From Chara braunii (taxonomy: Eukaryota; Plantae; Charophyceae), in NCBI GenBank assembly GCA_003427395.1, contig BFEA01000002.1, forward strand, positions 5,613,483 to 5,677,482: a stretch of DNA of 64,000 nt, read 5' to 3'. The position numbers and the translations under genes are program-made. Of the stretch, positions 6,284 to 52,529 are shown in pieces. Below the pieces are notes generated by a model. That model was not told where the DNA came from. It was given only the letters and a program-made list of their open reading frames with translations, and searched no databases. How positions within the stretch are numbered: the stretch's first letter is position 1; each line of letters begins with the position of its first letter.

Positions 6284-8957
6284 CGTCGACAAGTCTCTTC
6301 TACTACCCAGACTCATTAATTCATTCTATGAGATCTTTTTCTGTTTTTCTTTTTCTTTTTATTTAGCAGTGAATCGTATGATGAGATATTTATCATCTCT
6401 TAGGTCCTAGTATCAACGGCTCCCCACCTTTCCTTCTCTTTCCGCATGTTTCCTGTCTGTTGTTCTCTTATTTCTTCTTCTCCGCCTTTCTCCTCCCTCC
6501 CCTCTCCTCCTCCCTTTGGTCCCTCACATGCCGCCCACTTTTCTCCGCTTGTTGCTCTGTGTGGTCTTCCCGCCTCGTCTTTTCCTCCTCTCCTCCCTCC
6601 CCTCCCCCCCCCCCCCCCCCCCTTTCTCTCTCTCTCCTCGCTGTCTCATTCACAACTGTACTGTAGTTGCCGATCTATGNNNNNNNNNNNNNNNNNNNNN
6701 NNNNNNNNNNNNNNNNNNNNNNNNNNNNNNNNNNNNNNNNNNNNNNNNNNNNNNNNTCTTTCCATCTTGCTCTGCCCATCTCTGGAGCTCCCCCCCCCCC
6801 CCCCTTTCTCTCTCTCTCCTCGCTGTCTATTCTTCTCCTCTCCTCTTTTCAAATCCTGTCTCTGGCTCTTCGTTTTCTATGCCACCCTACTCCTGCAGGC
6901 ACCCTACCTTGTTTACCCTGTTGTCTCTCTGTATCTAGTCTATATCTGGGACAGATTACTATACTCGTTTTACTTGTCTGGAGTCGGCGTCTCGTCACTT
7001 GCAACGTGTATCTGCAGCCTCATTGCTGGCTGTCATCTCTCTTCCTGACGGCATGGCCACGTGTCATGTTGTCGCCCTTCTCTCTCTCTCCCCCCTTTCA
7101 CTCCGCGACTCCGCATGTTGTCGCTGTTCTCTCTCTCTCTCTTCCCCCCCATCACTCGACTCCGCATGCTGTCTTGTCGCTCCTCTCTCTCTCTCTTCGT
7201 CACTAGTTGACCTCTCTATAACGGACCTCTCTAGAACGTCACCTGCGCACGTTGATGCAAGGGACCTCTCTCCCTTTCTCTCTCACGTCTCTCCCCTCAG
7301 CCTCACGTCTGGTTGGCATTCTGTCTTCAGCGTCTTGTCCGCTTGTTTTATATACAGCCCGCTTCTCTCTTTTTTTTTTTTTTTTTGGGACAATCATTCA
7401 ATCTTTTCCCTAAATTTTGTATCCCCGGTCGGCCGCCCCGACAACTGACCGTCACCATATATGTCCTCCTACTCGCAGCACCGTCCGTACTGTACGATTT
7501 CCTGCTTCTCATCTGTTCAGCTTGGCTCTAACGTTCTTTGCCTCATGCCTCATGTCTTCGCCTAATACCCTAAACTCATTTCTCTCTCGTTTGTCCCTTT
7601 CTGATCAATCTTCCCTTTTTCTCTTCACTTTTTTTTCTCTTCCCTTTTTTACTCTTCCCTTCTTTTTTCTTCCCTTTTTCTCTTCCTTTCTCTTCCTTTT
7701 TCTCTTCCTTTTTCTCTTCCCCTTGTCATCTGTTTCCGGTTGTTGTCCCATCCTTTCTCCTCCTTTTGCTCTGTCATCCCTTCGCTCTCTTTCTGCCCCC
7801 CTTGTCGCTTCTTTCTTTCCCTCTTGTTCGTTGTCGTCCCTTTGTCCTCTCCTGCTACTTTCTCTTTTTCTCCCCGCTTCCTCTCTTTTGTCGTCTCCTG
7901 CTCCTTTCTCTTTGTCTCCCCCCTTTTGTCCTCTTTTTCTCCCCCCTTTGTCCTCTCTTTTGTCCTCTCGTGCTCCTTTCTCTTTTTCTCCCCCCTTGTC
8001 CTCTCTTTCTCTCCCTCTTGTCCATTGCCTTCCCTTGGTTCTCTCTTCCCCCGGTTTCTCTCAGCACTTCGCCCTATCTTGTTCCTCCTCCTCCCTCAGT
8101 CTCCTTTTTCCTCTCTTTCTCCTCTTTCTCCTCTCTTTCTCACTCGCCCGTTTCTCGCACATTCTCTCGTCTCTATGCCTCTCCCCATTCGGATATCGCT
8201 TTATTTGTCTTCTCTCTCTCCCTTGGATCTCATCCTGTTTTCTTCTCGTTAGCTATGGCTATCTTTTTCTTTTTTTCCCCTACAATCTTTACCCGAGTAT
8301 AACGCCCCCTCATTATGGTTTGCATTTAGACTGAAAGTTGCCCCAAATACAGCTATGATGACCGAGCGTTTTATTTGGGTGTTAGACTGTATGCACGTGT
8401 AGATATAGCATGTGGGTAGGTCTTTTCTTTGCCACGTCAGGCTCACACCTCTTTTTTTTTTTTTTTTTTGAATTAGCGAGAATATTGAAAACAGTGGCCA
8501 TAGACCATAGACTGCTTCTCGTACAAGCATTGATATCTAGGTCATCATCATCATTACTTCTCCTCATGTACTGTTCTCAGCAAGAAACGCGCGCGCATCA
8601 TCCCCGACGGAAGTGTATCGGCCAGGCTGCGCTCCCGGCCTTCCTCAGGGGGCTTTACTGCGTGCCGCATCTTTCTCGTTTCCAATCCTGTGCGAAGTGA
8701 ATCTTACCCATCTCTCCCTTTGTATACCATATCCAGACCACTTGTCCTGTTTCCATCCGCACCACGTGTCGTCATTTTATTTATTCATCACCTTTTATTG
8801 ATTATTTTTGTTTTTTGTTTTTGCATGGCCTTCAGAAATCATCATTGATCTGACCGTCCCCAGGGCAATTCTGGATCATCCTTTTTTTTTTCTTTCATAT
8901 ATATATTAAAATTTGGACCATTTCTCGATTTATGCGTGTCATCCTTGCGCAGGGGCC

Positions 8958-8989
<32 letters not shown>

Positions 8990-11900
8990 ACGGATGTCCC
9001 GAAGGACAATTATTCTCTTCATCTTAGGGTATCTGGATTGGAATCTTTGAGTCTGTATTTCAACGGTTCACGGGTGTACCAATTGAGCTAGGCCGGTTGG
9101 TTTCTTTCTTCTTCTTCTTCTTCTTCTCCTTTTTCATTTTTCATTTTTGAATCGGATGTACTAGGTAGTGCAGATTCATGGTCGGAGCCATCTGTTTTTT
9201 TTTCTGTCAATTTTTTTTTTCAACCGTCGATTACTGATCAGTTTGTGAACCTGCTCTCTACTTCTGTCGCAGTTGTAGCACTTCTCAGTGCACTCCCTCT
9301 TCTTCTCGATGTCAGCTTCTCCCAATCTGCTTCTACTTGGCTACGTCTCTTATGTCGCCTTCCATCTTGCCTACCCTTGTCACTTACCTGTCTTCCACCT
9401 ATTCTCATTATCCTCCGACAATGCCCCGACGTCTTGCATCTCTACCATCACTTACCTGTCTTCCACCTGCTCTTACTATCCTCCCATATCCCCTTTTCCA
9501 TTGCTCAAAGCCCTTCAAAGCCCTACTCCGTTGTCTCGTTCCACCTTTGTTCCCCTCCTACGTGTTGTACTTTCCTATCCTGATGATTCGCGGCCACTTT
9601 TGTGTGTCTGCTGTCTCTATGCGCGTATTACCTTTCTCCTCTCTCCATCTCCTCTCCTTGTCCTATTATGTATTGCTGACTCGGGCGGTACCTTTGGTTC
9701 CACAATGCCTCTCGGAGAACCAAACGGTGTAGCCGAGCCGACGCTCGGCTCCCGCAGCAAAAGAGAGAGAGAGGTCCTGCTGACATGGTGCAAATGGAGG
9801 TGATGGGAACGCGGTAGTCGAAACGCTGTAGCCGAGCCGACGCTCGGCTCCCGCAGCAAGAGAGAGAGAGCGAGCGATTTTTTTTTTTTTTTTTTTTTTT
9901 GAAGGCATGGGGGTGTAGATAGAGAGAGAGAGGTCCTGCTGACATGGTGCAATTGGAGGTGATGGGAACGCGGTAGCCGAGTGCGGAGGGGTTTGGGGAC
10001 TCGCTCCAGTACTCCACATACGACTGGTATCGGGACTGCTATGTGGACCGCATACAAGAAGACGGATCGAACATTTTGATTGTACTTGGTCCCTTTACCA
10101 GCTCCAAATTCATGTAGAATGGTGTGCAGTGCAGCCAGGCCTTCTGGGTTAGCGAGACTTGGGTGCATATTGCCGACTTGGGCGATAACTTCGATTCTAT
10201 AACGCCCTCTGGAGAAGGAGAGATTCTATAGCCCAGGCTTTAGGCTTTAGGCTTTTGGCTATCGCGTCCCTCCCCCTTCTCCTGACTAACCTGAGGTTAT
10301 TTCCGTAATCGGTATTGGTGTCATTCAAGAGCGCCAGCTACCCGACTTCCCACGAACTTAACGCACCCTGATAATGAATGCATCAAAGCTATATTTCCGG
10401 TCAGATACAGGCGGAATAAGGGTGCGTTGTGTTCGGGGGGAGACGGTAGTAGATCTCACTGTGAGTGGAAAGATAGCCTTCATTTGGACTTCTTCGACTT
10501 CAGGATGGAGGGGGAAAAAAACCTACCGACAAAATTGAATTAACGGGCTCAGTAGAATTAAATCAAGCACGATAACCGATGCACGTTTTTTTTTTGTATT
10601 TTTTTTTTGACGATTTCTTCATTTATGGGAATGGTCCAAAAAGGGTGGTGNNNNNNNNNNNNNNNNNNNNNNNNNNNNNNNNNNNNNNNNNNNNNNNNNN
10701 NNNNNNNNNNNTTTTTTTTGAACCGTTTCTTCATTTATGCGTGCCATCCTTGCGCAGGGGCCATGATCCTCAAATTCTTTGTATCGTTCCAATGATAACG
10801 GATGTCCGTTATCGGTTATCAAGGACCTTTGTAAATTTTTTTTGGTCCTTTTTTTTGGGTCCTTTTCTTCATTTTTGCACAGGACTTTTTATTTCGGAGA
10901 CAAGTGTGAAATGAAGAAAAGGACAAAAAAAAACGAAACAAATGCACTGCAAAAATGCGGTCCAGTGTGCGGGAAAAAATCGAATGAGGCATATTGGAAG
11001 AAGAATGAGAGGATGACCATTCGTTCTTGCAATGAGACAATCGTTGTTGTTTATCGCTTTGATCAGTTTTTTTTTTTTTTTTTTGAATTAGGTTTTGATG
11101 TTATTGCTCAATAATAATATTTAATAATTTAGGGTTTGCAAGGCAATCAAGGATTGGCGTCTTTGTCTCCTCACTTCTCTCCTACCCTCTTCTGTCCTAC
11201 CCTACTCTGCTATCCTCATCTCCTACGCTCGAATCTCGTTCTTTCTTCTCTCCCACCTTCTCCTCTTCTACCGTCTTTTTTTAAATCCCACTCTTCGTCC
11301 ACCCCCTCCTTCCCTGACCTCTACTACTGTCCCTACCCTCTCTCTCTCCTCTTCTCCACATCTTCTGTTCTATCAAAAAATTGAACCCCGCCTGTCTTCT
11401 CTCGGCACTTGCCTTCTTCTCCCTTCATGTCTTTTCTCCCCTCCCATAATGTTCTCTGCTTCCCATCGTTATCTCGTCCTTTCCATCTTCTCTTTCATTC
11501 ATCGGGCTTCTGTTCTCCCATCTCCTCGTTCTCTCTCCTCTCTCGCGTTCTGCTCTCATCTTTTCTTGTCTCCCGCCTTGTCTCGAACACTCTGTCTGCT
11601 TTCCCATCCCATCCTCCACATATCTTTTCTCCTTATCCATTCCTTGTTTTCTGATACCCTCTCTCTCTCCTTTCTCTTTGTCTCTTCTATCCTCTTCATT
11701 CTTATGCCTCACGCTCTAATGTTTGCGTTTTCTTCTTTCCCTGTCTTTGTTGCTTTCTCCTCTCTCTCTCTTTCTTCTCTTCTCTCTCTCTCTCTTATCT
11801 CTTCTATGCTGTTGTTTCTACTCTCCTGTTGTCGTTTCGCAGAGGCATTGGCATCTGTTGTGTCGGAATGCAAGCCGGGAGTGCGTGTCGTGGATCTGTG

Positions 11901-14900
11901 CGAGAAAGGGGACAAGTTCATAACTGAGTAAGTGTCCTGTGCCAGCCAGGGTGACCAGATTCGTTCTCGGCGGTTCTTAAACCCGATATCAGGATGGATG
12001 CATTCGTTTTCCTTTTTCCTTTCCCTCTTTCCCCTTTTCCTACAAATGCGTCATTTCTGGACAAAAAATAACTTCTTTTATTCGCATGAAAAAAATCCTT
12101 TCTTATAAGATTGCTTGCATCTCTCCGGCAGGATAGACGATTCTTTTTTTTTTTTTTAATTTTAAATGCGTCACTTCTGGACAAAAAAGCCAGTTTTTTC
12201 TTAGTCGCATGAAAAAAATCCTTTTCTTATAATAGTGCNNNNNNNNNNNNNNNNNNNNNNNNNNNNNNNNNNNNNNNNNNNNNNNNNNNNNNNNNNNNNN
12301 NNNNNNNNNNNNNNNNNNNNNNNNNNNNNNNNNNNNNNNNNNNNNNNNNNNNNNNNNNNNNNNNNNNNTTTTTTTTGAAACATAGACGGCCTTGAGATAT
12401 TATCATTGAGCTGACCGACCCCAGGCAATTCATTAGTAGCTGGTTTTCACTCATCAAGTTCCATCATCTGGATTCGAACACAGCACCTGGTCTGTATTTC
12501 AACATTTCATGGGTGTACCCACTGAGCTAGGCTCTTGGGTGATATCCGATTCTTCGGTCCTACCCCTTTGACGATGTAACTTGCGAGCGGGCATACTTTT
12601 TTTGTGGTTTCCTGATGTACCTGGCCGCAATTTCGGCGTTTATTCAGTCGGAATCTTTCAGGCTTTGCGGCCAAGTCCTCCTTCACCTTCGGTCATTTAA
12701 ACCACCTGTGCGGGGCTCTCTCCACTCCTGATGACACGCACAAAAGACAAAATATGGTTGTGAATCTGCTGATGGTCTAGCGGAAGGTTCATTCTTTTTT
12801 CTTTCCTTTCTAATCTATTGTCTTCTCTCATTGTACTCCCATATACTTTTTTCTTCTCTCAATGTATTCTATATAGTTTTCCTTATCTTATTCATCCTCT
12901 CGCTACTCTCTTATGTATAGTATAGGGGAACACTAACCGAGCCTGGGGCATTTTTTTTTAATATCCATGTGATTAACCCCGAAGTATTTGCCCAGGGGCC
13001 TAGTTCAGTTAAAAACCAAAGTATTTGCCTGCGGGCCTACCGTCTTCCCCCGAACATAACGCACCCTAAAAATGAATGTATACAAGCTATATTTCCGCCA
13101 GATACACCCGAAATAAGAAAAAAAAAGGTGTTCGGGGGAAGACGATAACTCGGCTGGTAAGGCACAAAAGTTGCACTGAGGAGGTCGTGGGTGCAATTCC
13201 CAATTGCCCTCACATACGGTGCCCTCACATACGTGTTCTACCAGCTACTAGCTAGTGATAACCCGTTGTTGTCCCCCCCAAGGCAGCATTGGCAGGACCT
13301 TGGGCGAACGTTGTTGATTGGTATCCAACAGCGATATTGACCATTATTTGTAGTGGGTTTTTAGTGGGTTTGGGTTCCTAGTGGGCGTGGGTTTCAGGTG
13401 GGTTGGGGTTATTAGCAGGTTGGGTTTCTAGTGGGTTTGAGTTTCTAGTGGGTTTGGGTTTCTGGGTTTCTAGTGGGCGTTGGCTTCTACTTGGCATGGT
13501 TTTGAGGTGGAACTCGTTGTGCCCCCCAAGCCGGCATTGGCAGGACCTTGGGCCAATGTTGTTGATTGGTATCCAACAGCGATATTGACCATTATTTGTA
13601 GTGGGTTTCTAGTGGGCGTGGGTTTCAGGTGGGTTGGGGTTTCGAGTGGGTTTGGGTTACTTGTGGGTGTGGGTTTCGAGTGGGCGTTGGTTTCCAGTTG
13701 GCATGGTTTTGAGGTGGGACACCGCGACCTAAAAAAATAATTATGGGTTTGGCAAAGCAAAAACCTCTTCTTCGGTGAAGGCGTGATAAAGATTACCCCT
13801 TAAAGTAATCCTAAAAAGAAAAATCTGGGTTTGGCAGAGCAAAAACGTCTTCTTTGGTGAAGGCCTGATAAATATTTCCCCTTTAGGTAAACCTAAAAAA
13901 AACAAATCTGGGTTTGGCAGAGCAAAAACGTCTTCTTTGGTGAAGGCGTGAGAAGACGTGATAAATATTTCCCCTTTAGGTAAGCTTTCCCTGTTCTGAG
14001 AAACCTTTAGCGGTCGTGACGGGAACCTTTTTTTTTTTTTTTTTTTTTTGACAAGGAAAGACAGTCAATTATATTCCAAAAAGAACTTCAGACCGAGGCC
14101 GGGGAAAGCTCACAATTCTACACGGAAATATGTGGCAGCTTCAGCCAGTTTAGCTTAATTATACAAATCACTTCTACTACTGTCTACTCTAAATCCGCCT
14201 GCTTCCTCATATTTTCCTCTGATTTATGTCATAGCTTCACCAGTTAAAAAAAAAAGCCTCTCTGTGTGGAAAAGCCTTTTCTAGATCTGGATGACAATTT
14301 CTCTCCTGTCATGCGAACCGTTGTTTGGTCTTTTTTACCCAATTTTCATCTAGCCTACCAGCCGGGCCGCCCGGGTCACCTTGTTTTCCCGGGCGGTCCG
14401 GCCGTGCGAAGACCTAAGAAAGATCCCGGCCAAAGAAAGGAAAATCCAAAAAAAACTGAAAAAAAAAGTTATGCAGAAAAATGAACGGAACAACTGTTGC
14501 CTCAGGGTCACATTGATTTTCTTTAATTAATTAATTTTTAAAAAAAGTTTTTTTCTTATGTTTTAAAATGCCCGGCCGGGTAAATGGTCCCCGGCCACTC
14601 TGGTACCCTATATTTTTACCCATTTTGAGTAATGCCTTCAGATACGGGTTAGAGCATCTCTAGATTCTCTACTTTTTTGGAAATTGCTGTTCGGGACTTT
14701 TTTTTTACCGTTTTAATGACAGAATTACCCCCTGTTTCCCCNGCCAATCTCACGATGCTCTTTTTTCCGAAAATGGGGCTGCGTCGAATTAAAAACGAAA
14801 GTTCTCTCTGTTTCTACTGACGTCTCTGACAATCTTCCTATATGATGAATGATATGTTTTGTAGCTTATAATGTTTTTTTCCCTTCATGACAAACCTTGT

Positions 14901-17900: not shown

Positions 17901-20900
17901 GGTCGTGGCTTGTGTGCGAGTTCGTCGTTTTCTCATGGCTGTATTTGACCAGGATGGTGTCTGTATACGTTCATAATGAGACGGAGTTTTTTTGGGTGAG
18001 GAATAAGGTCGTATGCCGTCAAAGAATGTTGCTTTGCTGTGCCATGTGTTGTCGTAATTATGCTTATGCTTAGATTGCTGTTTTGTTGTGGCGGCTTGTG
18101 TGTGCGTTCCCTTCTCTCTGTTGTTCGTTCAATACAGTGATCTCGGATGTCACATCGACGGTTTTATCGCGGTGGTTGCACATACTGTTGTCCTCCAAGA
18201 GCCAGGCACGCCAGTGGCTGGAAAAGCAGCAGATGTCATGCAAGCTGCTCAGACTGCTTCTGAGGTTGCTATCCGTCTCGTGCGGCCGGGGAAGAAGGTG
18301 TGTATGCAAACGTGTTTGTGCTTCGACGATATTCGAGTCGTATTCTATTTTGTTGGGACTTTCGTTTTTTTGAATTTGGACCGTTTCTCGATTAATGTGT
18401 GTCATCCTTGCGCAGGGGCCATGCTAATCTTCATTCTGTGTATTTCCAGTTTTAACGGATGTCCTGAAGGACAGAACTTTGGGTATTCTAGTGGGCCAGT
18501 GGTGTTGTAATTGTATTCTATTCTGTTGAAACTCTGTGTATTCTAGTGGGCCCAGCTCCACGGGCTCTCTCTGACCGGTCAGGTGCCCAACTGGGTGCAA
18601 AGTCCAGAGCTCGTCGAGGCAATCCCGGGAAGTCCAGCACGGAATCTTAAGAATGCGAGGATTCAAAAACGTCGGGGAAAACAAAATCATTTTGAATGCG
18701 AACTTTTTTGTCGAAAAGTCGCTCTGACAATCTCTAGTACAGTCAATCGACAAGATCCCTAGCGCATTCAAACGAGAAGATGAGTAATATATCAAGTAAA
18801 GTAAAAAATAGAAGATGCACCCCTGTAGCACCTGTATACCCCTGTTAAATCCTGGATTTTTTTAACCTTGTTACCGTCCAACTGCATTTAACGAAACAAA
18901 TAATTAATAATATTGAATAAAATAAGGGGAGATGCACCCCCATTGCCGTTGGTTGTGTGTTTGAGTCTTGTATGCGGATTACACACAGGCCTGGCTCCCC
19001 ACTGTGTTTTTTCTCGGGGTGCGAAATCCGCGATGGGGAAAAAAAGCTCAGAGGTTCTGGTGGTTGTTTAGTGTTCGAAGTGGGTCAAGGGGGGGTAATT
19101 CAATATGGAAGTAAGGGTCCGTCTTCGTGTCTGGTTTGTCGTCTTATACAGGAGTCTACAATGCTTCTTCTGGATGTTGTGCTGGTGGAGGAGTTTGACA
19201 ACGTTGATTTGAAACATCTGCAGTGGAACCTGGACAGGATTTTGTACTGTGGTGCAAAGATATTTTGCTGCTTTCCTGATATGATGTTATTGGAAGCGAG
19301 CAGCAAACTGCGAATCGTTTTCCTGGCATCGCTTAATTGGATGGGTAGGGAAGTCAAGTTTTGATTGGCTAGGGTATATGTTTGACGACGGCTTTCCCAT
19401 GTCAGGTGTGCTATGGTTTCTATTTGCATTCATTCAATGTTGCATTCATTCGAAGAATGCGATGCGGTGACAAGCTCAAGAGGAGGATGATGAAACGCAC
19501 TGGGCACCGACTCTCCGTGAGAGAGATGCTTGATAGGGCCTAGAAAACCCAATCCTGACTCCTCTCTCCCTTTCCCCCGCTTCGCTTTTCCCTTTTTCCC
19601 CATCCTGCGGACCGGGGCCGAACGGACTGATTGCCTTGTATGGTTGTGATCGGACCCGAAGGTGAACCGGTTATTGGGCCGGAGTTTAAGTGGCTGGATG
19701 TCACACGTGTGTAACTTCTAGTATACAGATCGGGAGTTCAAGCCGTAACAGGATCAGGTGGATACAATAATGGTAAAGGATGGGAGGAGGGATAGGAGGG
19801 TATGCCATCATCCATCTTGCGAACGGGGGCTGAAGGGACTGCCTTGAAAGATTGCAATTGGACTCGAGGGGAAGCTGCGTATATAAAACCAGTCAGCCCA
19901 TGTTGTCTGATAACGTTGACGTTTTGGCGTATTGAATGTGCTAATCTGTCCCACGTTTGCTAGAATTTTAACCGTTGGAAAGGAGGAAGAAGGATGAAAC
20001 GCACTGGGCACTGATTAATCCTTTGTGATCGAGATGCAAAAAGGGACTTGAAAACCCATGGCCGACTTCCCTTTTATTAGGTGACCAGATTTCTTGGCTT
20101 TGTTGCTGTACTGGATTTGCTAATCTGTCCCACGTTCGCTAGATTTTTTAACCGTTGTAAACGAGGGAGAAGGATGAAACGCACTGGGCACTGATTAATC
20201 CTTCGTGATTGAGAGGCGAAAAGGGCCTAGAAAACCCATTGCTGACCTCCCTTTTATTAGGTGACCAGATTTCTTGGCTTTGTTACTGTATTGGATTTGC
20301 TAATCATCTCCATGGTCGCTATAGATCTTTAACTGTTGTATACGAGGAAGGAGGATGAAACGCACTGGGCACTGACTAAACCCTTTGTGATCGAGACGCA
20401 AAAAGGGCGTAGAAAACCCATTGCTGACTTCCCTTTTCATGCATTTGAAACATTGTATTGGAGATAGACTTCACTTCGGAGAGGATGCCTTGTTGTTCTT
20501 GAAAGACAAAGAACCTGTCCAAAACCAGATTCCAAGACGAATAGCCCCAGCGAATGTGCATTTCTGAGGGCTCTTTTTCCGGGTCGAAACGGAGGGGTGA
20601 AAATGGACTTCGCAGTGTCGGCAACAAGTCCGGCATATTATAATGGACACACTGACTGATTCATGGTAAAAGGGAGTTAAACACTGGAGAGGAATGTGTT
20701 TTCGCACTCTCTTTTCGACATAGAGAAAAAAGGAAACAAAGTGTGATAGGGAGTTGTCATATTGCACTGGGCACTTGAAGGGGGAAGAAGGATGAAACGC
20801 ACTGGGCACTGATCTCTGTGATCGAGACGCGAAACGGGCCTAGAAAACCCATTTCTGACTTCTTATTCTCACATGTCATGAAAGAATTGAAGCAAGGTAG

Positions 20901-23900
20901 GTAGGTTGAAGTTCGGGATAACGCCGGGGCATTGACTTTGTGTTGTGGGCTAGAGCCTGTCGATCGTAGGGGAAGAAGGATGAAACGCACTGGGCACTGA
21001 TCTTTGTGATTGAGAGGCAAAACGGGCCTAGAAAACCCATTTCTGACTTCTCTTTCTCACATGTCATGAAAGGATTGAAGGAAGGTAGGCAAGTTGAAGG
21101 TAGGGCCTTTGACTTTGTGTTGTGGGTGAGAGTGGCTTCGATTGGAACCTGTCGATTGTAGGGGAAGAAGGATGAAACGCACTGGGCACTGATCTCTGTG
21201 ATTGAGACGCAAAACGGGCCTAGAAAACCCATTTCTGACTTCTCATTCTCACATCTCAGAAAAGGATTGGAGGAAGGTAGGTAGGTTGAAGTTTGGGATA
21301 AGGCCGGGGCATTGCCTTTGTGTTGTGGCTGAGAGCGACTTTGAGTGGAACCTGTCGGTCATAGGGGAAGAAGGATGAAACGCACTGGGCACTGATCTCT
21401 GTGATCGAGACGTAAAACGGGCCTAGAAAATCCATTTCTGACTTCTCATTCTCACATGTCAGAAAATGATTGGAGGAAGGTAGGACGGTTGAAGTTCGGG
21501 ATAAGGCCGGGGCATTGACTTCGTGTTGTGGGTGAGAGCCTGTTGATCATAGGGGAAGAAGGATGAAACGCACTGGGCACTGATCTCTGTGATCGAGAGG
21601 CAAAACGGGCCTAGAAAACCCATTTCTGACTTCTCATTCTCACATGTCAGAAAATGATTGGAGGAAGGTAGGTAGTTTGACGTTCGGGATAAGGCCGGGG
21701 CATTGACTTTGTGTTGTGGGTGAGAGCCTGTCGATCGTAGTGGAAGAAGGATGAAACGCACTGGGCACTGATCTCTGTGATCGAGACGCAAAACGGGCCT
21801 AGAAAACCCATTTCTGACTTCTCCCTCTGGCTACAAAGGGATTGGACGGAATTTCTTTCACCAAGGTAGGATGGGCTGCGGATTCTCGATGAGAGACGGA
21901 TCGCTGTGATCGAGAGGCAAATCCGGCCTGGGAAACCCATTTGTGACTCGCTCTGGCCACAAAAAGGATTGCACGGAACTGCTTTGACCATCTCTTCCAG
22001 ATGGAGAAAGCGGGAAAGGACGTTGGCTGATTGAAGGGGGAGCAGGATGAAACGCACTGGGCACTGATCTCCTCTGTGATCGAGAGGCAAATCGGGTCTA
22101 GAAAACCCATTTCTGACTTCTCCTTCCGTCTTGTTATTAAGCTGTCGAATGAATGGAATTCAATTTGTCGAGGGATGCAGACTGAAAAAGAAAAAGTAAA
22201 AGAGAAAGTAAAGAAAGGGATGCAGACTGGAGTTGGAGCTAAAGGGGAAGACCACTTTTGTTCTATGCTGCGGTCAAGGAAGGGATGAATGAGTCTAGAG
22301 AGTTTTCTCGTCAGAATCGTATCTCCTTTTCAAATGACATTGGAAAGTAAGACATAGTATGGTACAGTACTACACATGATATTTTTGAGGAACAGGGACG
22401 TTTTGCATAGTAATAATTATGTGGAAACGTAGGCGTCAGGCGTAAGTATGTTTCCACTTTCTTTTGTTGACTGTAGGGGGAGGATGATGAAACACGCTGG
22501 GCTCTGATCTCTGTGATAGAGAGGCGAACTGGGCCTAGGAAACCCATTTCTGACTCCTCCTTTTGAGGTGTTTGGAGTTGTATATTTTTAGTTCAACGTA
22601 GGTGAACTGGAGTTTGTCGTGAAGGGCAGAACACCCACTGTATGCTTTGGATGAGGGGCTGAATGAGTTGCATCTCCTTATTTCTGTCGTATGTGATTTT
22701 CAAATGAAGTTGGAAAATAAGCTGCGGTGTCCTTCGGGACATCCGCTGAAATTGGAACGATACAGAGAAGATTAGCATGGCACCTGCGCAAGTATTGACA
22801 CGACTAACTCGAGAAATGGTCCAAACGTTTTTAGGAAAATACGGTGCGGCATATGGTACATGGTCTTTCGTAAGGAACAGGTACATTTTTTTGTGTCATG
22901 TAATTACTGTCTTCTGCATCCGAGTAAAACGTATGGTCATTGTAGCGGTATTTGGTGTATCTTTCCGTGTAGATACAGCAGTAACGACCGTAGGTTGTAT
23001 TCGGGTGAAGAAGGGTAATTAGTAATTACTAATTAATTTATTAATGATTATTACCTTGGAATGCACAGTTTGTAGTCCTGTGGGCAGTCAGGTGGAAGTG
23101 CAATCAGAGCCAGAGCAAGTTTTTTTTTTTTTTTTTTTTTTTTTTGATGAATCGATTTGAGCACAGTGGAGGGTAGTTACTTTTGGGCCTCCGTCCACTG
23201 TGTAATGCTCTTCATGCATTTGGATGCTTTCTGGATAGGATACATCAAGATGTCGGAATCGTCCGAATGCAGCTGGTCAAGAAATTTACCCAAATGCAAG
23301 TAGAATGCCGGGTAGTGCAGCGAGGCCGTTTATTTGAAGTTGGGGGGTGTGTTTGTCAGTAGGGATATGAAATCAGGGTACTGTCAGGCTGAAGTTGTGC
23401 AAGTTTGAAGTCTCCCATATGCATGTGTTTGTCTGAGCAGGTGTCAGGGATGGCGGGGTACGCAGTAAGCAGCTGTGGAAGGTGTTTTGGTGTTGGATTC
23501 CTGTGTTGGCTACACCATAAGTTATCTAGTGCTCTACCTCTTGGAATGAAGATCGCACATGCACATTAATCCACAGCTCCTCCAGAATGGCTGGTTATAC
23601 CCCAGAGAGAAGGATTGAGTTTGTGAGTGAAGTCATCCCTGTGTGTTTGGCAAATCTATGGATCATGTACCCATGTCAGAGATATCTTTTCCCAAGGACT
23701 GTTGCACACTAGAAGTAGAAGAGAGAAAAGACTTTGATCTGTACGAGTGCTTTGTTGTTGTTGTAGTCTCTCTCTCTCTCTCTCCCCTCTCTCTCTCTCT
23801 CTTACATCCAGTATGCTTGTTCTTCCCGTCGCGGATTTACTTTCTGCCTGCTCTCTCTCTCTCTTACATCCTGGGATGCTTGTTCTTCCTATTGCGGAGT

Positions 23901-32410: not shown

Positions 32411-34655
32411 GTGCTGATGATGGAAAAAAAAATGTTATTCGAAGGCAGCGCCTGCCGTTGCTCTTATGAGGCATTGAATATAATTGTCACTACCACTGAA
32501 GCACACACCAATGTCGATGCTCTGTAGCTCAGGCCATAGATGCTTGTGCAATCCTGCGTGTCAAATCCCTGGAAATGGGAGGGGACGTTCCAAGAGTAAA
32601 TAGGGTCCCGGCGATGGAAAAAAGCGGTGTCGATGGAAGGCATATGGGAGGCTCTGCTGGCTGGTGTGGATGTTTTCAGAGTGGATTGGGTGCTGATGAT
32701 GATAAATAAATGTTATTTGAAGGCGGCGTCTGTCGCTGCTCTTATGAAGCATTTAATATAATTGTCACTACCACTGAAGCACACCAGTGTCGATGCTCTG
32801 TAGCTCAGGACGTAGATGCTTGTCCGATCTTGCGTGTCAAAAAAATCCATGGAAATGGGAGGGTGCATTCCAAGAGCGAATAGGGTGCCGGTGATGGAAA
32901 AAAAGCGGTGTTGATCGAAGGCAACATCAGTGGTAGAATATAATTGTCACTACCACTGAGGCGAATATAATTGTCACTAAACTTAGAATATAATTGTCAC
33001 TACCACTGAGGCACGCACACCAGTGTCGATGCTCTGTAGCTCTTTCAGGTTTGCTGTCCGTCTTGAAGAATTTAGTTTGGCCAAATTGGTAGGATGTTGG
33101 CTGCTAATGATGGAAAACTACTACAAAAGATGAAGGTGACATGCGTTGTTGCGCTTGTGAAATTCTTCAAGTAATTGTCACTACCTCTGAGGCAAGCTGA
33201 ATGTGGATGGTCTGGAGTCGGGAGCAGGGGGGGTGCGTTGCGTTAAGTAAACCACATAGATGGGCAGCTTACCGCGCTTAGCGACTGGGAGAACTTAGTT
33301 TGGCCAAATTGAGAGGATGGTGGCTGCTGATGATGGAAAAAGACTGCAAAATCTGAACGCGACATCCATTGTTGCGCTTGTGAAATTTCTTAGAGTAATT
33401 GTCACTACCGCTGAGGCATGCCGATGTGGATGACGTGGAGTCAGAGGCAGGGGGGTGTGCATTCCTGTACGGAAAAAGCATGTAGATGGGCCGCTGACGG
33501 CTTTTGGTGAGTCTGGCAGGTCCAGTTAGTGTTTCCCTTCCATTTTTCGTGCGATAAGGTAAATTTTGGTGCCACGCTTCGAAAAGTACTTCGCTTGGAT
33601 CGAGAACAAATTTCATCTCGTTTGACAGATATCAGCCGTTGGCTGCCGATGATGGAGAACCTGAAAACACTGAAGGCAACGTTTGGAGTTGTTGCTCTTG
33701 TGAGAACTCTCAACACAATTGTCACTACCACTGAGGCATGCTAACGCAGAGGCTGTGGATCTCTCTTCTTGGGTAAGAGGCTTTTTCTTTTTTTTCTTTT
33801 TCTTGGGGGGGAGGGGGGGTGAGAGACGCAAATTTGTTCTGAAAACATTGTAGTTGTTCTTCGAGAGGAGTGAAGTGGGTGCTAATGAGAGAAAACATGC
33901 AAATAATGAAAGGCGACATCTACCGTCTTCACCCGAATAAAATGCCCGGTCATTATGGCTGCATCTAGACTGAAAGTTGTGCCAAATACAGCTAGAATGA
34001 CTGGGCGTTCTATTTGGGTGAAGACGGTAGTTCCCAGTTGCGAAACTTCTACACAAGTGTCACTACGGCTGAGTCATCGCAGCCTGCTCCCTGGCCACAA
34101 ATGTAGTGAGGCATCCAATTTTGCTCTGGTTGGTTGGACTTTTATGGTGTCCATCTCTCTATTGGGCAATTGGATGCGTTTTTCTTTGGCCAACAGTATG
34201 GCACTCCGCTTTCTGGAATGATCATTTGGGTGGCTCTTTTTTTTTCTCTTCTTTTTTTGCGCCAATCGGATGCTTATGATGGAAAAATCGCAAAATAACG
34301 AAAGGCAACATTTGCCTATCTGTGTGTGAACCTCGAGATCATATTGTCACTACCGCTGAGGCATCCGATACTCTGATTCCAGGGCATGAATGTTATGAAT
34401 CAGGGCGTGAATGTTATGAAAGAGTCTGTTCTACTGCATTGATTAGGTGTTAAGGCTATCCTCCTCACTTTTAGAGAGCCAAGAGGGGTTTATCTCGTAT
34501 TTGACTGGACTTGAACCTGATACCTTTCTTTACACTCGACGACCTCGAGTCGGTTATTGGGTGCTAATGATGGAAAACCTAGCAATAACGAAAGGCAACA
34601 TGTGCTTTTGTCGCATGTGTGGAATTTGAAATTATTGTCACTACCACTGAAGTAC
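32411..34655 (+). ncRNA. Tandem array of about 9 box C/D snoRNAs guiding the SSU rRNA A in GGU[A]GUGACAAU (human Am512/SNORD70-equivalent site)
   Basis: Units at about 32411-32504, 32690-32783, 32885-33014 (partial with duplicated end), 33101-33195, 33324-33419, 33643-33738, 33879-34075 (MITE-disrupted), 34271-34363 and 34561-34655. Each has a TGCT/AGCA-type stem, box C ATGATG(G/A), guide ATTGTCACTACC, N and box D CTGA. Confidence 0.88.
33921..34029. mobile_element. MITE family 1 inserted in a snoRNA unit
   Basis: TA-CCGTCTTCACCCGAA...TTTGGGTGAAGACGG-TA between box C and the guide of the unit. Confidence 0.85.
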
Positions 34656-34847
34656 CCTTTTTTTTTTTTCCTTCCACCTTTGTGCAGGATACCACTGGAG
34701 GCTAGTGTTCTACTAGCAACTCCATAAGAAATGCAACACTGTTTTTTTTTTCCTGTTTTTATTTTTTTTTTTACTTTTATTTTTTCTGGCCTCACGTTCT
34801 CGCAAATGACTTCATCCCAGTGACAGCTTCTAGAATAGGAGAACGGC

Positions 34848-34961
34848 TACCTTCTTCCCCCGAATACAACCTTTGGTCATTATAGCCGTATCTAGACTGA
34901 AAGATGCCTCAAATGCAGCATCGATACTGGCCCTGTGTGTTGTATTCAGACGAAGAAAGTA
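34848..34961. mobile_element. MITE family 1
   Basis: TA-CCTTCTTCCCCCGAATAC...GTATTCAGACGAAGAAAG-TA. Confidence 0.65.
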
Positions 34962-35002
34962 GCCATGTGCAAGTCGACTTGTTGGGTCATATTTGTCCAG
35001 TT

Positions 35003-35303
35003 CTTACTTCCGTCATTTTTACTTCCGTCATTTTTACTTTTGTCATTTTTACTTTTGTCATTTTTACTTTTGTCATTTTTACTTTTGTAATTTTTACTTC
35101 CGTCATTTTTACTTCCGTAATTTTTACTTTTGTAGTTTTTACCACCGTAATTTTTACCGCCGTAATTTTTACTTCCGTAATTTTTACTTTTGTAGTTTTT
35201 ACCACCGCAATTTTTACCGCAGTAATTTTTACTTCCGTAATTTTTACTTTTGTAGTTTTTACCACCGTAATTTTTACCGCAGTAATTTTTACTTCTGTAA
35301 TTT
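35003..35303. repeat. 15-bp minisatellite (TTTTTACTTYYGTMA)n, about 20 copies
   Basis: Directly visible; source of the VIFTS/KNYGS repeat ORFs. Confidence 0.9.
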
Positions 35304-35523: not shown

Positions 35524-35654
35524 GTGTGATAACGAGAAGCCGATGTGGAAGGCCATGTGCAGCAATATCTGTCATCCTAGTTTGGAAATTTTCTCGCCTA
35601 ATTGGAACCTCTTCAGTATTCGAAGATATTTTCCATACCGACGTTTGGAGAAGC

Positions 35655-35767
35655 TACTGTCTTCACCCGAATGCAATGTACACAGTCATTATAACCGTAT
35701 CTGGTGCAACTTTGAGTCTAGATACAGCAATAATGAGGGTAGGTTTTATTTGGGTGTGTAGACAGTA
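35655..35767. mobile_element. MITE family 1
   Basis: TA-CTGTCTTCACCCGAA...TTGGGTGTGTAGACAG-TA. Confidence 0.75.
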
Positions 35768-38744
35768 GCACTGCTAATCTCATCACTAGTCCGTAAGTTT
35801 ATATCTGGGAGGCTGTGTCATTGAATTATGCTCCACCCATGCGCTTCACGTTAGGTTGACATTACCGTTTGTATGTCTCGATCACGCTCACGGTTAAGTC
35901 GCACCGTGACCTGTTTCCCAGAGGCTATGGAAACCTCTGGGAAATGAGAAGTCGCACTGTGACATGTTGTTTTTAAGAATGGTAAGGCGCATGCTCACGT
36001 CTTGCACTCTACAGAATGATGAGTCACACCGTGACCTGTTGTTTTTAAGAATGGCGTCTCCACTTTCATGCCCAGTGCACCAAAACACGTCCAGGAGTTG
36101 TTGCGGCTTTCTATTTAGTCTTGTTGTATCTGGTCCTGTTATTGAATTTGGTGTAGGCGGGGATTTCACGACTACGCACCTGTGCAGTGCTGAGTGAGGT
36201 GGTGGCCTCACTCCGTCTCCGCTGCTGCATTGAAATTGGCGACAAATGAAACGAGAACTGTCTATTATATTCAGAAAATAGAAAGTAGAGTAGCTCATGT
36301 CTGCACTTCTCACTCGCTTCCAATTGAACGCCGTCGCTTGAATAGAACACACGGATGATATAATAGTTGCACTTGGTGCGAGTTTCAGCCCAGATGCAGA
36401 GATAATGCCCAAGTGTTGGGTTCAGATGAAGATGGTGGATCACTCCGTGTCAAATGCAAGCGCGAACTACGGCAGCACCATGAACTGCACACCCGCGGCA
36501 AAGGTCACTAAGCATTGTCATCGGGCCAAATGGGTTTTTGCGGAGCGACTGTAATTACAGGCTTAGCTAGTGAAGTACCTGTTGTAGGAGACACCAAAGT
36601 AACTTGGTTATGTGGAGGCTTCTCAGTGGATAACGCAACCTTAGTGTGTGGCAGGCTGAAAACAATTTGTGTGCCAGACAAGATAAAGGGCCGAGAGAGG
36701 TGCTTGCGGGATCAGAGCCATAGCATCAATGGTCATGCTGACTGCAAGCGTGCTGTGCACGATAAAAGTGTTTGGTTTGGTGATGATGGGTCAAATGGAC
36801 GATGAAGGGTTGGGTTATCGAGAATGATTCATGCTACAAATTTGCGTTAAGGTAGCCAGTCAAACGCTTGTAAAACACCACATACGGTGCTGATGTGGTT
36901 ATTGCAGAATGCAGCTGCGAGAGCCTGCAGGATTTCTGGGGCATTGGAACAATGCTAGCAACAGTTGGCTTTTGTGCTTTCCAGACACTTGGCGCTTGAT
37001 GCGGAGGGCGGCAGTTTGAATCCGCGTTTGCACTGTTGAGGTCTTAGGCGCACATGTGCGTATGCTGCTGCCATGGAATCAGGAGCTACATAGATCGTTC
37101 TGGTGCTGATCACCGAGTCGTGGCTCTTGCGGTCGAGGACGCTCGGTCGAATCCGTGTTTGCACGGAGGAGCTACATAGGCGGATCCATGAACTGCTTCT
37201 GGTGCTGCTGCTATGTAGGTGCCAGGTCGCTTGGTCGAATCCGTGTTTGCACGCAGAAGCTACATAGGTGCCAGCGAGTGGGGCGAGAAGAAGGAATGCA
37301 CGTTGAAGAAGAGTTGAAGAGGGGAAATGGAGTGTGCCTGTCACAGGAGAAGGGCGACAAATGGGTGCAGGTTTTGGGAGAGTAGGGAAGAAAGTCCTTG
37401 AGGGCGTGTTGGGCGTCATGTGCTGAAGGCGCTGTTGTCTCTGACCAAGTCCGGGCGTGATGAAGTCTTTGTACAGCACATGGATACACCAAATGCGGTG
37501 CATCTGGACTTGGTGCAAAATGCAACGAATCCGATCCCTACGATTGCCTGTTCACAGGAGCGTCTTCCAAGCGAAGGCTTGAGGCGCTGGTGTCCAAGGA
37601 GTTTGTCTGCCTACCCTCGTCCCCCGAATGTAACATGTGCTGTGTATTCAAGATTTGAAAAAAAAAACAGAACGATGATTGGAACAGAATGTAAATGAGC
37701 TGCATTCGAGTATTGTGGCTGTTTGAACCATGTGCTTTTTATAAACCAACACAATGCACAAGTTGCTTTCTATTCGAACACAACACGTGCACGTTCTATT
37801 GCAGTGCAACTCGTACGCATTCTGTTCGGATAGAATCGGGTCGTGTTATATGCGAATAGGAAGCAACTTGGGCGGTGTCTTGGTGTGGAATGCATATGCA
37901 ACGTTTATCATGCGATATGTTTGTGGAAAGAATGTATTAGTTCGCACGCATTTGAATTGATGAAAGTCCAGAGAGGCTATGGAAACCTCTTGGAAATGGA
38001 CAGCCATAGTGGCTTATAAAGATCTGGTGTTTGAGGAAGAGCCTTGCATGGATTGTCGGTTTGAGCGCTCTGGCATGAAGTCCAATGAAATTTTGAGGAT
38101 TTTGCAGGCCGATGAGTGCGAGAATCGTTATATGTTGCTGCAGGCGAGATATGAAATGCAAGAGTGTAGAGCTGCTCTTTGGTAGTTACGCAAATTGTGG
38201 TCGACGAGGGATCTGGTATGTGCGGGATGGCGCGCTTACAGAGTTATTTGTTCGTCTCGTTGCATCTGGAGACGGATGTGGGTTTTTGCATGTCAACAGC
38301 TCATTGGTGTACCAGCTGCAGGATGGCACTTTCACTGTGGGGCAATAATGGGGCTGTCTCTCATTTAAATGGCTGAATGCAGTGAATGGATGATTGACAT
38401 TAACGATTATCTGCGCTTTGATGGTTTGGATGTCATGGAGTATGAAGAAGGTAGTGGTCTTGGGTGCTCAGATGGATAGAAACTCTGCGTGATGTACTTC
38501 GTTTTTAGCATCATTTTTTATTACAATAATGTGATAAGCTTCCAGTCTATGAAGTGTTTGGATGGATTTGGAAAAAAAAAAAAGAGGCATATAATATACA
38601 TAGTCAACGAGGAAGAAGAGACGACTGGTGTCAGCAGTTTAGGTCTTACAGGACGGAGGAGGATTGCTGCTGTTTCTGTGTTCAAAGTCTAGATTATAAC
38701 AGATAATCATACCGCTACTGACAGATAAGGAGGCCTTTCCTATC

Positions 38745-41190: not shown

Positions 41191-41274
41191 TGTCGGTTGA
41201 CATTTACTTTTATTGGTCAAAATGCTCTGTGTTCTGTACATTCTCCTTTTTCGTTTTCTTTTTATTTGAATCAA

Positions 41275-41477
41275 TTCTTGATTATGGGTGTCATCCTTGG
41301 GCAGGGGCCATGCTATTTTTTTTTTTTCAGTATTGTTATTATCGCATGAATTTTAACTTGAGAAATAGAAGCAAATAGTTTCTTAATAATTTATACAGAA
41401 TCTTTGACTATTCTTCTTCTTAATATATTTTTTCTATAAAGAAAGAGAAATTAAGTAAAATGTAAATCCCGAAGGAC
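41275..41477 (-). pseudogene. U6: U6 pseudogene split by an AT-rich insertion
   Basis: GTGTCATCCTTGGGCAGGGGCCATGCTA (41288-41315) and the 5' end TCCCGAAGGAC (41467-41477). Confidence 0.7.
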
Positions 41478-51576: not shown

Positions 51577-51745
51577 AGGCAAAAGTTGCTTGTACATGAC
51601 TCCAGTGCCACAGACTCCAGTGCGTCTCTTGAAACCCACTTATGTTTTATTTTAAATGCGTGTGCCAAGTCCGTGCACACCCTTTTTTTTTTTTTTTTTT
51701 TGAACGCCTGTGTTTTGGCCTACTCCGTGCTCTTCCAAAATTGGC

Positions 51746-52072
51746 TGCCATCTTCACCCAAATACAACGCCCAGTCATTATAGCTGTATTTGGGACATCT
51801 TTCAGTCCAGATACTGCGATAATGACCAGGTGTTGTATTCGGGTCAAGATGGTAGTTTGGTCCCAGTCTCAGAGCTGACCGCGCCAGGCAAAAAACATTG
51901 CATGGATATTATTATTATTATGTGTCGAAGTCGTCTGGCCAAACTGACTTGGGACCAAACTGCATCGCTACCATCTTCACCCGAATAAAACGGCCGGTCA
52001 TTCAAGCTGTATTTGGTGCACCTTTCAGTCCAGATGCACTGGGCGCTGTGTTGCGTTCGGGTGAAGACAGTA
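51746..52072. mobile_element. Two adjacent MITE family 1 copies (51746-51854, 51969-52072)
   Basis: CCATCTTCACCC..ATA...TTCGGGT(C/G)AAGA..GTA ends. Confidence 0.75.
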
Positions 52073-52529
52073 GTTTGTTCCAAGTCTGGGAGTCTACTTG
52101 ACCGGGCACACAAAAATTATGCATGGCTATTTTGGTCCCAGTCTGTCTTTGCCGAACTGAATTCAATTTGGCAGCACCAAAAAAAAAAAGAAAAAAAAAA
52201 AAAGTAAAGGGGCCCTTGGGGGGTGTAAAAACATAGCCCTTGCTTGTCTGAGTATGTAATATGTATGTGAGGGAGATTGACTCGGTGCTGATTTCTTTTG
52301 CATCCCTGTTTGCCCTAAGCAGAAGTACCAACTGATTTAGCAAATGAGCACCCTTTTTTTTTTTTTTTTTTCCTCAATTTGAAGTCCCATGTTTGATTTC
52401 ACACCAGAACAAAGCCCCCTTTGATCAAAACGATGACTCCCTTTCGCCTAAGTGCGAGTGGGGGTCACAATCGGCTGAGGACCAAGTTGGCAAATTGGCA
52501 AATATGGGTGAAGGATTCATCATTCATAT

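Follow-up and report, generated by a model that had tools for sequence, protein, structure and literature searches.

A stretch of 64,000 nt from the charophyte alga Chara braunii (GenBank assembly GCA_003427395.1, contig BFEA01000002.1, positions 5,613,483 to 5,677,482 of the forward strand; "the window" below, with positions counted from its first base) very probably contains, downstream of the gene for EBP1 (PA2G4), a head-to-tail array on the + strand of paralogous box C/D small nucleolar RNA (snoRNA) genes, seven of them apparently functional and three decayed. A motif search of the window for the predicted guide, ATTGTCACTACC, returned nine exact matches, which without exception lie on the + strand at 32483-34645, against 0.29 expected by chance, and none of 100 shuffles reached nine. 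Each of these guide copies is followed by a single variable base and then by CTGA.

The nine matches are distributed over eight units, namely seven intact ones (U1, U2, U4, U5, U6, U8 and U9, 93-99 nt each) and a rearranged one, U2'. With unit limits set by eye and by a repeat search of 32200-34900, ten units were delimited in total, the decayed ones being U1', U2' and U7, and they follow one another head-to-tail on one strand, 180-340 bp apart (Table 1). A preliminary description of the locus, made from the sequence alone, had counted about nine units of roughly 92 nt; that figure stands when taken as intact and decayed units together, and seven plus three is the better count. The seven intact units were aligned (alignment A1, with the rearranged and decayed units left out), and the covariance model (CM) built from this alignment, R1, found no match above 18 bits in the window outside the array.

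Unit structure and conservation

Intact units have the layout of box C/D snoRNAs, with box C close to the 5' terminus and, in 7/7, CUGA close to the 3' terminus. The 5' half consists of one side of a terminal stem, a 3-nt bulge (NAU), box C, about 15 A-rich nt, a degenerate D' box and a short hairpin; the 3' half consists of a degenerate C' box (RUGA...), a spacer of about 14 nt, the 12-nt guide, a free base, box D (CUGA) and the 3' half of the stem. Box C reads AUGAUGG in six units and AUGAUGA in U2, and the D' box is CUGA only in U5 and U6. None of the positions that we take to be important for a kink-turn is missing: the units have the GA of both boxes as well as the U-U and G-C pairs. When folded singly, each of the seven sequences has its ends joined by 7-11 bp in the minimum free energy (MFE) structure and contains an internal hairpin, and RNAalifold recovers both the terminal stem and the internal hairpin from the seven units. 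For the inner five stem pairs, 91% of the cells are paired, as opposed to 29-49% when the partner strand is slid, and two pairs covary among copies, one as U:A/U:G/C:G and the other as G:C/A:U.

Conservation within the units is sharply partitioned. Invariant columns of the alignment comprise 12/12 positions of the guide, 4/4 of box D and 6/7 of box C, whereas mean pairwise identity is 0.48 in the D' region, 0.57 in the internal hairpin region and 0.40 in the spacer between C' and the guide. It is 0.35 and 0.46 in the 80-nt flanks, about what unrelated sequences yield when their alignment is optimised. The single base that separates the guide from box D is free to vary (identity 0.33). Invariant columns make up 9% of the non-box body, so that twelve consecutive ones would arise by chance with a probability of about 5e-13. 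The young pairs U1/U2 and U4/U5, whose spacers are still alignable, unlike those of the saturated alignments, were tested separately: 0/59 functional sites differ within these pairs, compared with 79/397 other sites (p = 6e-6), or 1/62 compared with 79/397 when the gapped G/A at position 7 of box C is counted (Fisher p = 4e-5).

Variation between strains follows the same partition. Two sequencing runs from two other studies, X1 and X5, labelled "RNA?", were treated as DNA-like, being flat over the spacers and thousands-fold on a miniature inverted-repeat transposable element (MITE) in the array; their contigs reproduce the array piecewise, which provides independent support for the assembly, not for expression. 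Within the array, X5 differs from the window by 12 single-nucleotide polymorphisms (SNPs) and 2 indels, none of which falls in box C, guide or box D. The SNPs at 33186 and 34355 hit the free base beside box D, the one at 33742 replaces a G:U pair of a stem by G:C, and the one at 32693 breaks one stem pair of U2. The array also holds an internal control in U7, a copy killed by insertion of the MITE, which has changed in exactly those elements that are invariant elsewhere. Because guide and box D are invariant and box C almost so, the free base varies and the MITE-broken U7 has mutated, we conclude from these comparisons that each surviving copy is under purifying selection for small nucleolar ribonucleoprotein (snoRNP) function, or was so until very recently. 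The preliminary description had reported that terminal stem, box C, guide and CTGA were kept while the middles diverged, and had proposed purifying selection as the cause. The first point is borne out by the alignment (middles 40-57% and flanks 35-46% identical), in which guide and boxes are conserved beyond the spacers, and the second is supported by this conservation together with the young-pair comparison and the decay of U7.

On the D' side the array has no conserved guide. The D' regions were also considered as new guides, a reading rejected as far as comparison with U6 and the young pairs can show: the longest antisense run to the U6 small nuclear RNA (snRNA) copies of the window is at most 8 nt, and divergence within the young pairs equals the spacer rate.

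Predicted target in 18S rRNA

The fifth base from box D, the T of ACTACC, is complementary to the A in the GGUAG of GGUAGUGACAAU, a sequence of 18S ribosomal RNA (rRNA). The match to GGUAGUGACAAU extends over 12-14 nt, beyond the 10 nt asked of a guide, and places the fifth position opposite the base that is modified in Arabidopsis. The target motif was taken from published 18S sequences because a scan of viral contigs for it, in which ribosomal DNA was sought, gave 17 loci of which 0/9 checked contained rRNA. In the 18S genes of Chlorella and Dunaliella, the GTGCCAGCAGCCGCGG loop is preceded at a distance of about 100 nt by GGGAGGTAGTGACAATAAATAAC (PMC7699214), and published Panax 18S primers also carry the motif. 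In Arabidopsis, 18S Am468 has been mapped by RiboMeth-seq and assigned to SnoR17 (PMC8053127); it is guided by the 3' guide of AtsnoR17 (At1gCDbox46.1), corresponds to human Am512 and has no yeast counterpart (PMC8583080). In human, the binding sites of snoRD11, snoRD56 and snoRD70 overlap, and A512 falls within them (PMC5612246). The numbering is consistent: a distance of 5 nt separates Arabidopsis Am468 from Cm473 and likewise the A from the C in GGUAGUGAC. Two earlier proposals about the target thus held up, namely that the guide pairs with small-subunit rRNA, through the GGUAGUGACAAU match and the presence of the motif in green-algal 18S (PMC7699214), and that the fifth position upstream of box D selects the adenosine equivalent to human Am512, the SNORD70 site, through its equivalence to Arabidopsis Am468 (PMC8583080, PMC8053127, PMC5612246).

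Relatives of the array

In Rfam at E values up to 10, the array gave sub-threshold C/D matches only, the best of them to snoR17 (RF01289) with 26.9 bits against a threshold of 60. In the snoR17 consensus, CACAAUUGUCACUACCUCUGAGGCAU represents this same guide, likewise separated from CUGA by one base. Neither snoR122 (RF02407) nor SNORD70 is listed at E up to 10. Human SNORD70 is presumably intron-encoded and present in one or a few copies. A search of the array against the Rfam C/D families, as suggested in the preliminary description, therefore had a divided outcome: a sub-threshold match with the same guide was found, and no family reached its gathering score.

We also scanned metagenomes for the guide followed by NCTGA, which gave 119 loci, most of them the expected chance matches for a 16-base pattern. 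R1 picks about 20 of these loci with a complete C/D unit, part of their score arising by construction since they were preselected by the guide. The plant-type loci are named snoR122 by Rfam and lie within clusters of Z267, one to three snoR44 and snoR122, an arrangement found in 10/12 plant-type loci. This is the same cluster as rice snoR44-snoR17-snoR147a (PMC5122169), and it corresponds to two paralogous clusters on Arabidopsis chromosome 1. Plant-type contigs with Z267, snoR44 (one to three copies) and snoR122 include L006 (576-1868), L025 (2268-3267) and L004 (10485-11117); L006 repeats the snoR44-snoR122 pair, a local tandem duplication of the family in land plants too. A metagenome contig from an unknown eukaryote (L081, 144-244; also L102) carries a C/D unit of 101 nt whose D guide is the same and whose D' and C' boxes flank a GGCC hairpin; the D' region of this unit, AAAUGUUGUUGAGAU, resembles AAAUGUUAUU of U1 and U2; by sequence, this unit may be a closer relative of the Chara array than the land-plant copies are.

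Plant snoR17/snoR122 and the Chara units have an identical 12-nt D-side guide placed one base before CUGA, so that the predicted target of both is 18S Am468; in an alignment with land-plant-type loci (A2), this guide and its spacing are identical in 7/7 Chara units and 11 land-plant-type loci. They further share a last position of box C other than A, and land-plant homologues can begin with the same 16 nt as U6 (UUGGCUGCCGAUGAUG). These plant-type relatives fit a streptophyte host. Plant snoR17/snoR122 are nevertheless shorter (about 75-90 nt, compared with about 95 nt in Chara), and the D' element UGCACGUAUUAUC, conserved in the land-plant loci of A2, is absent from the Chara units. Land-plant homologues sit in a mixed Z267-snoR44-snoR17 cluster (PMC5122169), whereas the Chara array consists of a single family and Rfam finds no match to Z267 or snoR44 in the window. 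Human SNORD70 addresses the same modified nucleotide, Am512 being Arabidopsis Am468 (PMC8583080, PMC5612246). The array units are thus best described as predicted functional equivalents of plant snoR17/snoR122 and human SNORD70. With regard to family, they are a divergent charophyte branch or a functional equivalent of snoR17/snoR122 and not a certified member, because score threshold, D' guide and cluster context all fail.

Proposed mechanism and alternative explanations

In the mechanism that we propose, boxes C and D of each intact RNA of about 95 nt would meet beside the 7-11 bp terminal stem to form a kink-turn, to which the core snoRNP proteins Snu13/15.5K, Nop56, Nop58 and fibrillarin would bind. 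The 12-14 nt guide 5' of box D would then pair with 18S rRNA at GGUAGUGACAAU, and fibrillarin would 2'-O-methylate the A of GGUAG, equivalent to Arabidopsis Am468 and human Am512. The array would have grown by repeated unequal crossing-over, with U6, U8 and U9 as old copies and U1/U2 and U4/U5 as young pairs, and would have lost copies by deletion, rearrangement and transposon insertion, in a process of birth-and-death evolution during which selection would maintain boxes C and D, the guide and a paired stem in all copies that survive. Stable snoRNA production, methylation in Chara and the mode of transcription of the array are inferred. On the last point, our rough apportionment gives a promoter of the array's own about an even chance, read-through from EBP1 a somewhat smaller one, and introns of an unannotated non-coding host the smallest.

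Several observations weigh against a functional snoRNA array. At gathering thresholds, Rfam finds six U6 snRNA copies only in the whole window and nothing in the array. The last base of box C is G instead of A in 6/7 copies, and D' and C' are degenerate. Stem covariation is statistically weak with seven sequences, 63-106 of 500 shuffles reaching the observed values. The pairing with 18S is derived from sequences of other Viridiplantae, and it is not obvious why selection should act on each of seven redundant copies. Finally, expression was assessed by oligo-dT RNA-seq, which does not bear on mature snoRNAs, and its reads on the array are few (depth 0-4), with none at 32732 to about 33200 and at 34190-34837.

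The redundancy of the copies invites a different reading, in which one or a few of them are functional and dead ones look conserved through gene conversion of guide and boxes. Redundant copies should be individually dispensable, 3/10 units are visibly decayed, and a tandem layout favours both conversion and unequal exchange, as in the chimeric U2' and its copy-number polymorphism. Conversion tracts would, however, have to cover box C, guide and box D everywhere, skip one base, and leave the 60-nt middle only 40-57% identical; moreover, the terminal stems differ in sequence and still pair in each copy, and the clearly dead U7 has not been converted back. We regard this explanation as very unlikely. 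Less credence still, in fact next to none, is due to a non-functional repeat, either a satellite or a set of retroposed snoRNA pseudogenes, whose snoRNA likeness would be historical. Such an origin might be suspected in a window rich in repeats and MITEs, where the six U6 snRNA copies of falling quality resemble dispersed pseudogenes, but the units run head-to-tail on one strand without poly(A) tails or target-site duplications, and their conservation is exactly that expected for snoRNP function and far from neutral.

A further alternative to snoRNA genes processed by nucleases from a polycistron bears on their expression only and leaves the identity of the units unchanged: the array might belong to a spliced, non-coding host gene of the UHG or GAS5 type that has escaped annotation, each of whose introns would hold one or a few units. 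Pyrimidine-rich tracts after U6 (33779-33807), before U8 (34234-34262) and after U9 (34657-34685) would fit such a host, rice and Drosophila have intronic snoRNA clusters (PMC2780460), and EBP1 contains an intronic array in this same window. The two oligo-dT runs nonetheless contain no splice joint inside, into or across the array, the joints listed there coming from the dispersed MITE, and they have no exon-like peaks of poly(A)+ depth between units. We consider an intronic host unlikely.

Genomic context and expression

The two checked EBP1 exons match PA2G4 residues ~165-230 and 313-369 of 394, which places the gene on the + strand and ending upstream of the array, in agreement with the earlier placement of the array downstream of EBP1; Pfam searches with the single exons, which are too short, gave no match. 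The array begins about 1.5 kb past the end of the EBP1 mRNA signal. Another C/D array lies on the same strand within an EBP1 intron (19480-22560) and also consists of one family in tandem. Unlike the downstream array it is intronic, and it belongs to a different family, R1 reaching at most 8.4 bits there.

Expression was assessed over 30140-34990 with two stranded oligo-dT RNA runs, X17 and X18, bearing the same species label. All first mates at 30140-32731 are on the - strand, which in the usual library design means + strand RNA. From about 50 at 30140, mean poly(A)+ depth has dropped to 2-4 by 31000 and to 0-1 over 31600-32080; it amounts to 1-4.6 over 32084-32731 (U1, U1' and the start of U2) and is almost nil past 32731 apart from the MITE. 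This weak, precursor-like polyadenylated sense RNA on the first units is compatible with read-through from EBP1 or with a start near 32100.

Directly 5' of the array, 32120-32386 contains a 41-nt repeat in three copies (32120, 32230 and 32346), with a 32-nt repeat containing GTCCACATGGGAGG in two copies at 32274-32337; this segment might serve as a promoter or just be a repeat present in many copies. Coverage by poly(A)+ reads increases once more at 32084-32245.

Within the EBP1 region, 28736-28773 consists of back-to-back 19-nt Nextera transposase ends (CTGTCTCTTATACACATCT and its reverse complement), a mate-pair junction adapter, adjoined by a 93-nt poly-C run at 28589-28681. Together, 28589-28773 looks like an assembly or gap-filling artefact, and local distances are perhaps unreliable. 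A 106-nt direct repeat (1.8 copies) in an EBP1 intron at 25991-26181, with GGAUGCUGAAUGAUGCC in each copy and a weak R1 score of 12 bits, could be another small-RNA pair.

Implications

Clusters of head-to-tail snoRNA genes with local duplication are known from Arabidopsis, rice and Chlamydomonas, and paralogues in spatial clusters are common in plant snoRNA families (PMC5122169, PMC2780460). The tandem organization and local duplication of the Chara genes are thus a known plant and green-algal habit and reveal no new mechanism. Typical plant clusters mix families, however, and what is specific to this array is a ten-unit single family outside any recognised intron, in which old and young duplicates have been kept with the same guide. 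A literature search found no snoRNA study of Chara. The array extends the 18S Am468/Am512 guide to a charophyte alga, which supports an old origin of the site in the green lineage and, should SNORD70 be truly related, outside it as well. The array further offers a natural experiment on snoRNA constraint, comprising ten paralogues of different ages, a neutral base within a conserved block and a transposon-killed copy, and should be useful for annotating the Chara assembly.

A lineage-wide mode of amplification, as raised in the preliminary description, is a reasonable though tentative reading of the locus. In a broader and, in our view, doubtful version of it, stoneworts would owe their snoRNA dosage to single families amplified in tandem within the lineage, every copy being held individually by selection, and not to mixed clusters as in land plants, and both arrays (about 19 usable copies of two families) would be fed by the EBP1 promoter, the first from an intron and the second by read-through of the poly(A) site. 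Were this true, it would represent a "downstream-of-gene" way of hosting snoRNAs, with EBP1, a ribosome-associated protein, as the feeding gene.

Individual units and other features of the window

Table 1. Units of the snoRNA array and other annotated features of the window (positions in the window; CM, score with model R1)
Feature	Position	Strand	Details
U1, intact box C/D snoRNA gene	32409-32506	+	box C AUGAUGG; guide 32483-32494; box D 32496-32499; stem GUGCU/AGCAC; MFE fold closes both ends; CM 104.1 bits
U1', decayed 5' fragment, second sub-type	32602-32655	+	box C changed to GCGAUGG; guide and box D missing; CM 13.2 bits
U2, intact	32685-32788	+	canonical box C AUGAUGA; CM 106.8 bits; fold z = -3.2
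U2', rearranged chimera	32883-33014	+	box C GUGAUGG; compensated stem GUGCC/GGCAC; CM 46.6 bits
U4, intact	33097-33200	+	ends closed in MFE fold; CM 104.8 bits
U5, intact	33321-33423	+	duplicate of U4, period ~224 bp; canonical D' CUGA; CM 101.1 bits
U6, intact	33638-33745	+	CM 96.0 bits
U7, pseudogene split by MITE	33877-34078	+	two pieces, CM 18.4 and 10.6 bits
MITE-like insertion in U7, 111 bp	33920-34030		perfect 15-bp terminal inverted repeats CTACCGTCTTCACCC
U8, intact	34265-34369	+	longest terminal stem, 11 bp in MFE fold; CM 83.5 bits; fold z = -3.4
U9, intact	34559-34657	+	stem GGGUGCU/AGUACCC; 12-T run directly after; CM 91.9 bits
EBP1/PA2G4 exons, upstream gene	24262-27790	+	24262-24456 and 27602-27790 checked; phmmer against PDB, E = 1e-14 and 8e-7
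MITE copies	13037-13148, 25522-25632, 28128-28237, 33920-34030, 35654-35768, 51745-51855, 51968-52073, others		
U6 snRNA, six copies	8907-9007, 22729-22830, 18370-18477, 28864-28966, 10712-10826, 41260-41363	both	105 down to 44.5 bits

U2 is a young duplicate of U1 and lies inside a repeat of about 279 bp. U2' combines the 5' half of the second sub-type, as in U1', with three mini-repeats of 23 nt, each made up of guide and box D; the guide is complete in two of them and partial in the third. The 3' flank of U2' is 100% identical to that of U2. In run X5, which stems from another strain, a 23-nt deletion at 32963 leaves one mini-repeat fewer. At 32926-32964 of U2', just 5' of the first guide, stands CAGUGGUAG, the exact complement of the 3' end of the guide plus box D (CUACCACUG); from the sequence this looks like an inverted micro-duplication, and the resulting hairpin would mask the guide. 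In U7, box C reads GAGAG, the guide carries two changes (AAGTGTCACTACGG) and box C' is lost. Read depth on the MITE at 33920-34030 is in the thousands, and loose read ends fall exactly at both of its edges.

This MITE belongs to a family of about 100-115 bp with 15-bp inverted repeats, of which at least eight inward-facing pairs occur in the 64 kb. Its reads reach depths of thousands in the DNA-like runs, and some lie on both strands in the RNA runs. A 15-nt tandem repeat of 20 copies, with a 60-nt higher order, occupies 35004-35303, 350 bp 3' of the array, and creates spurious long open reading frames on both strands. Upstream of the best U6 snRNA copy we found no recognisable promoter motif when looking for a plant-type upstream sequence element and TATA box, and A-rich sequence follows the copy; several of the U6 snRNA copies in the window may be retro-pseudogenes.

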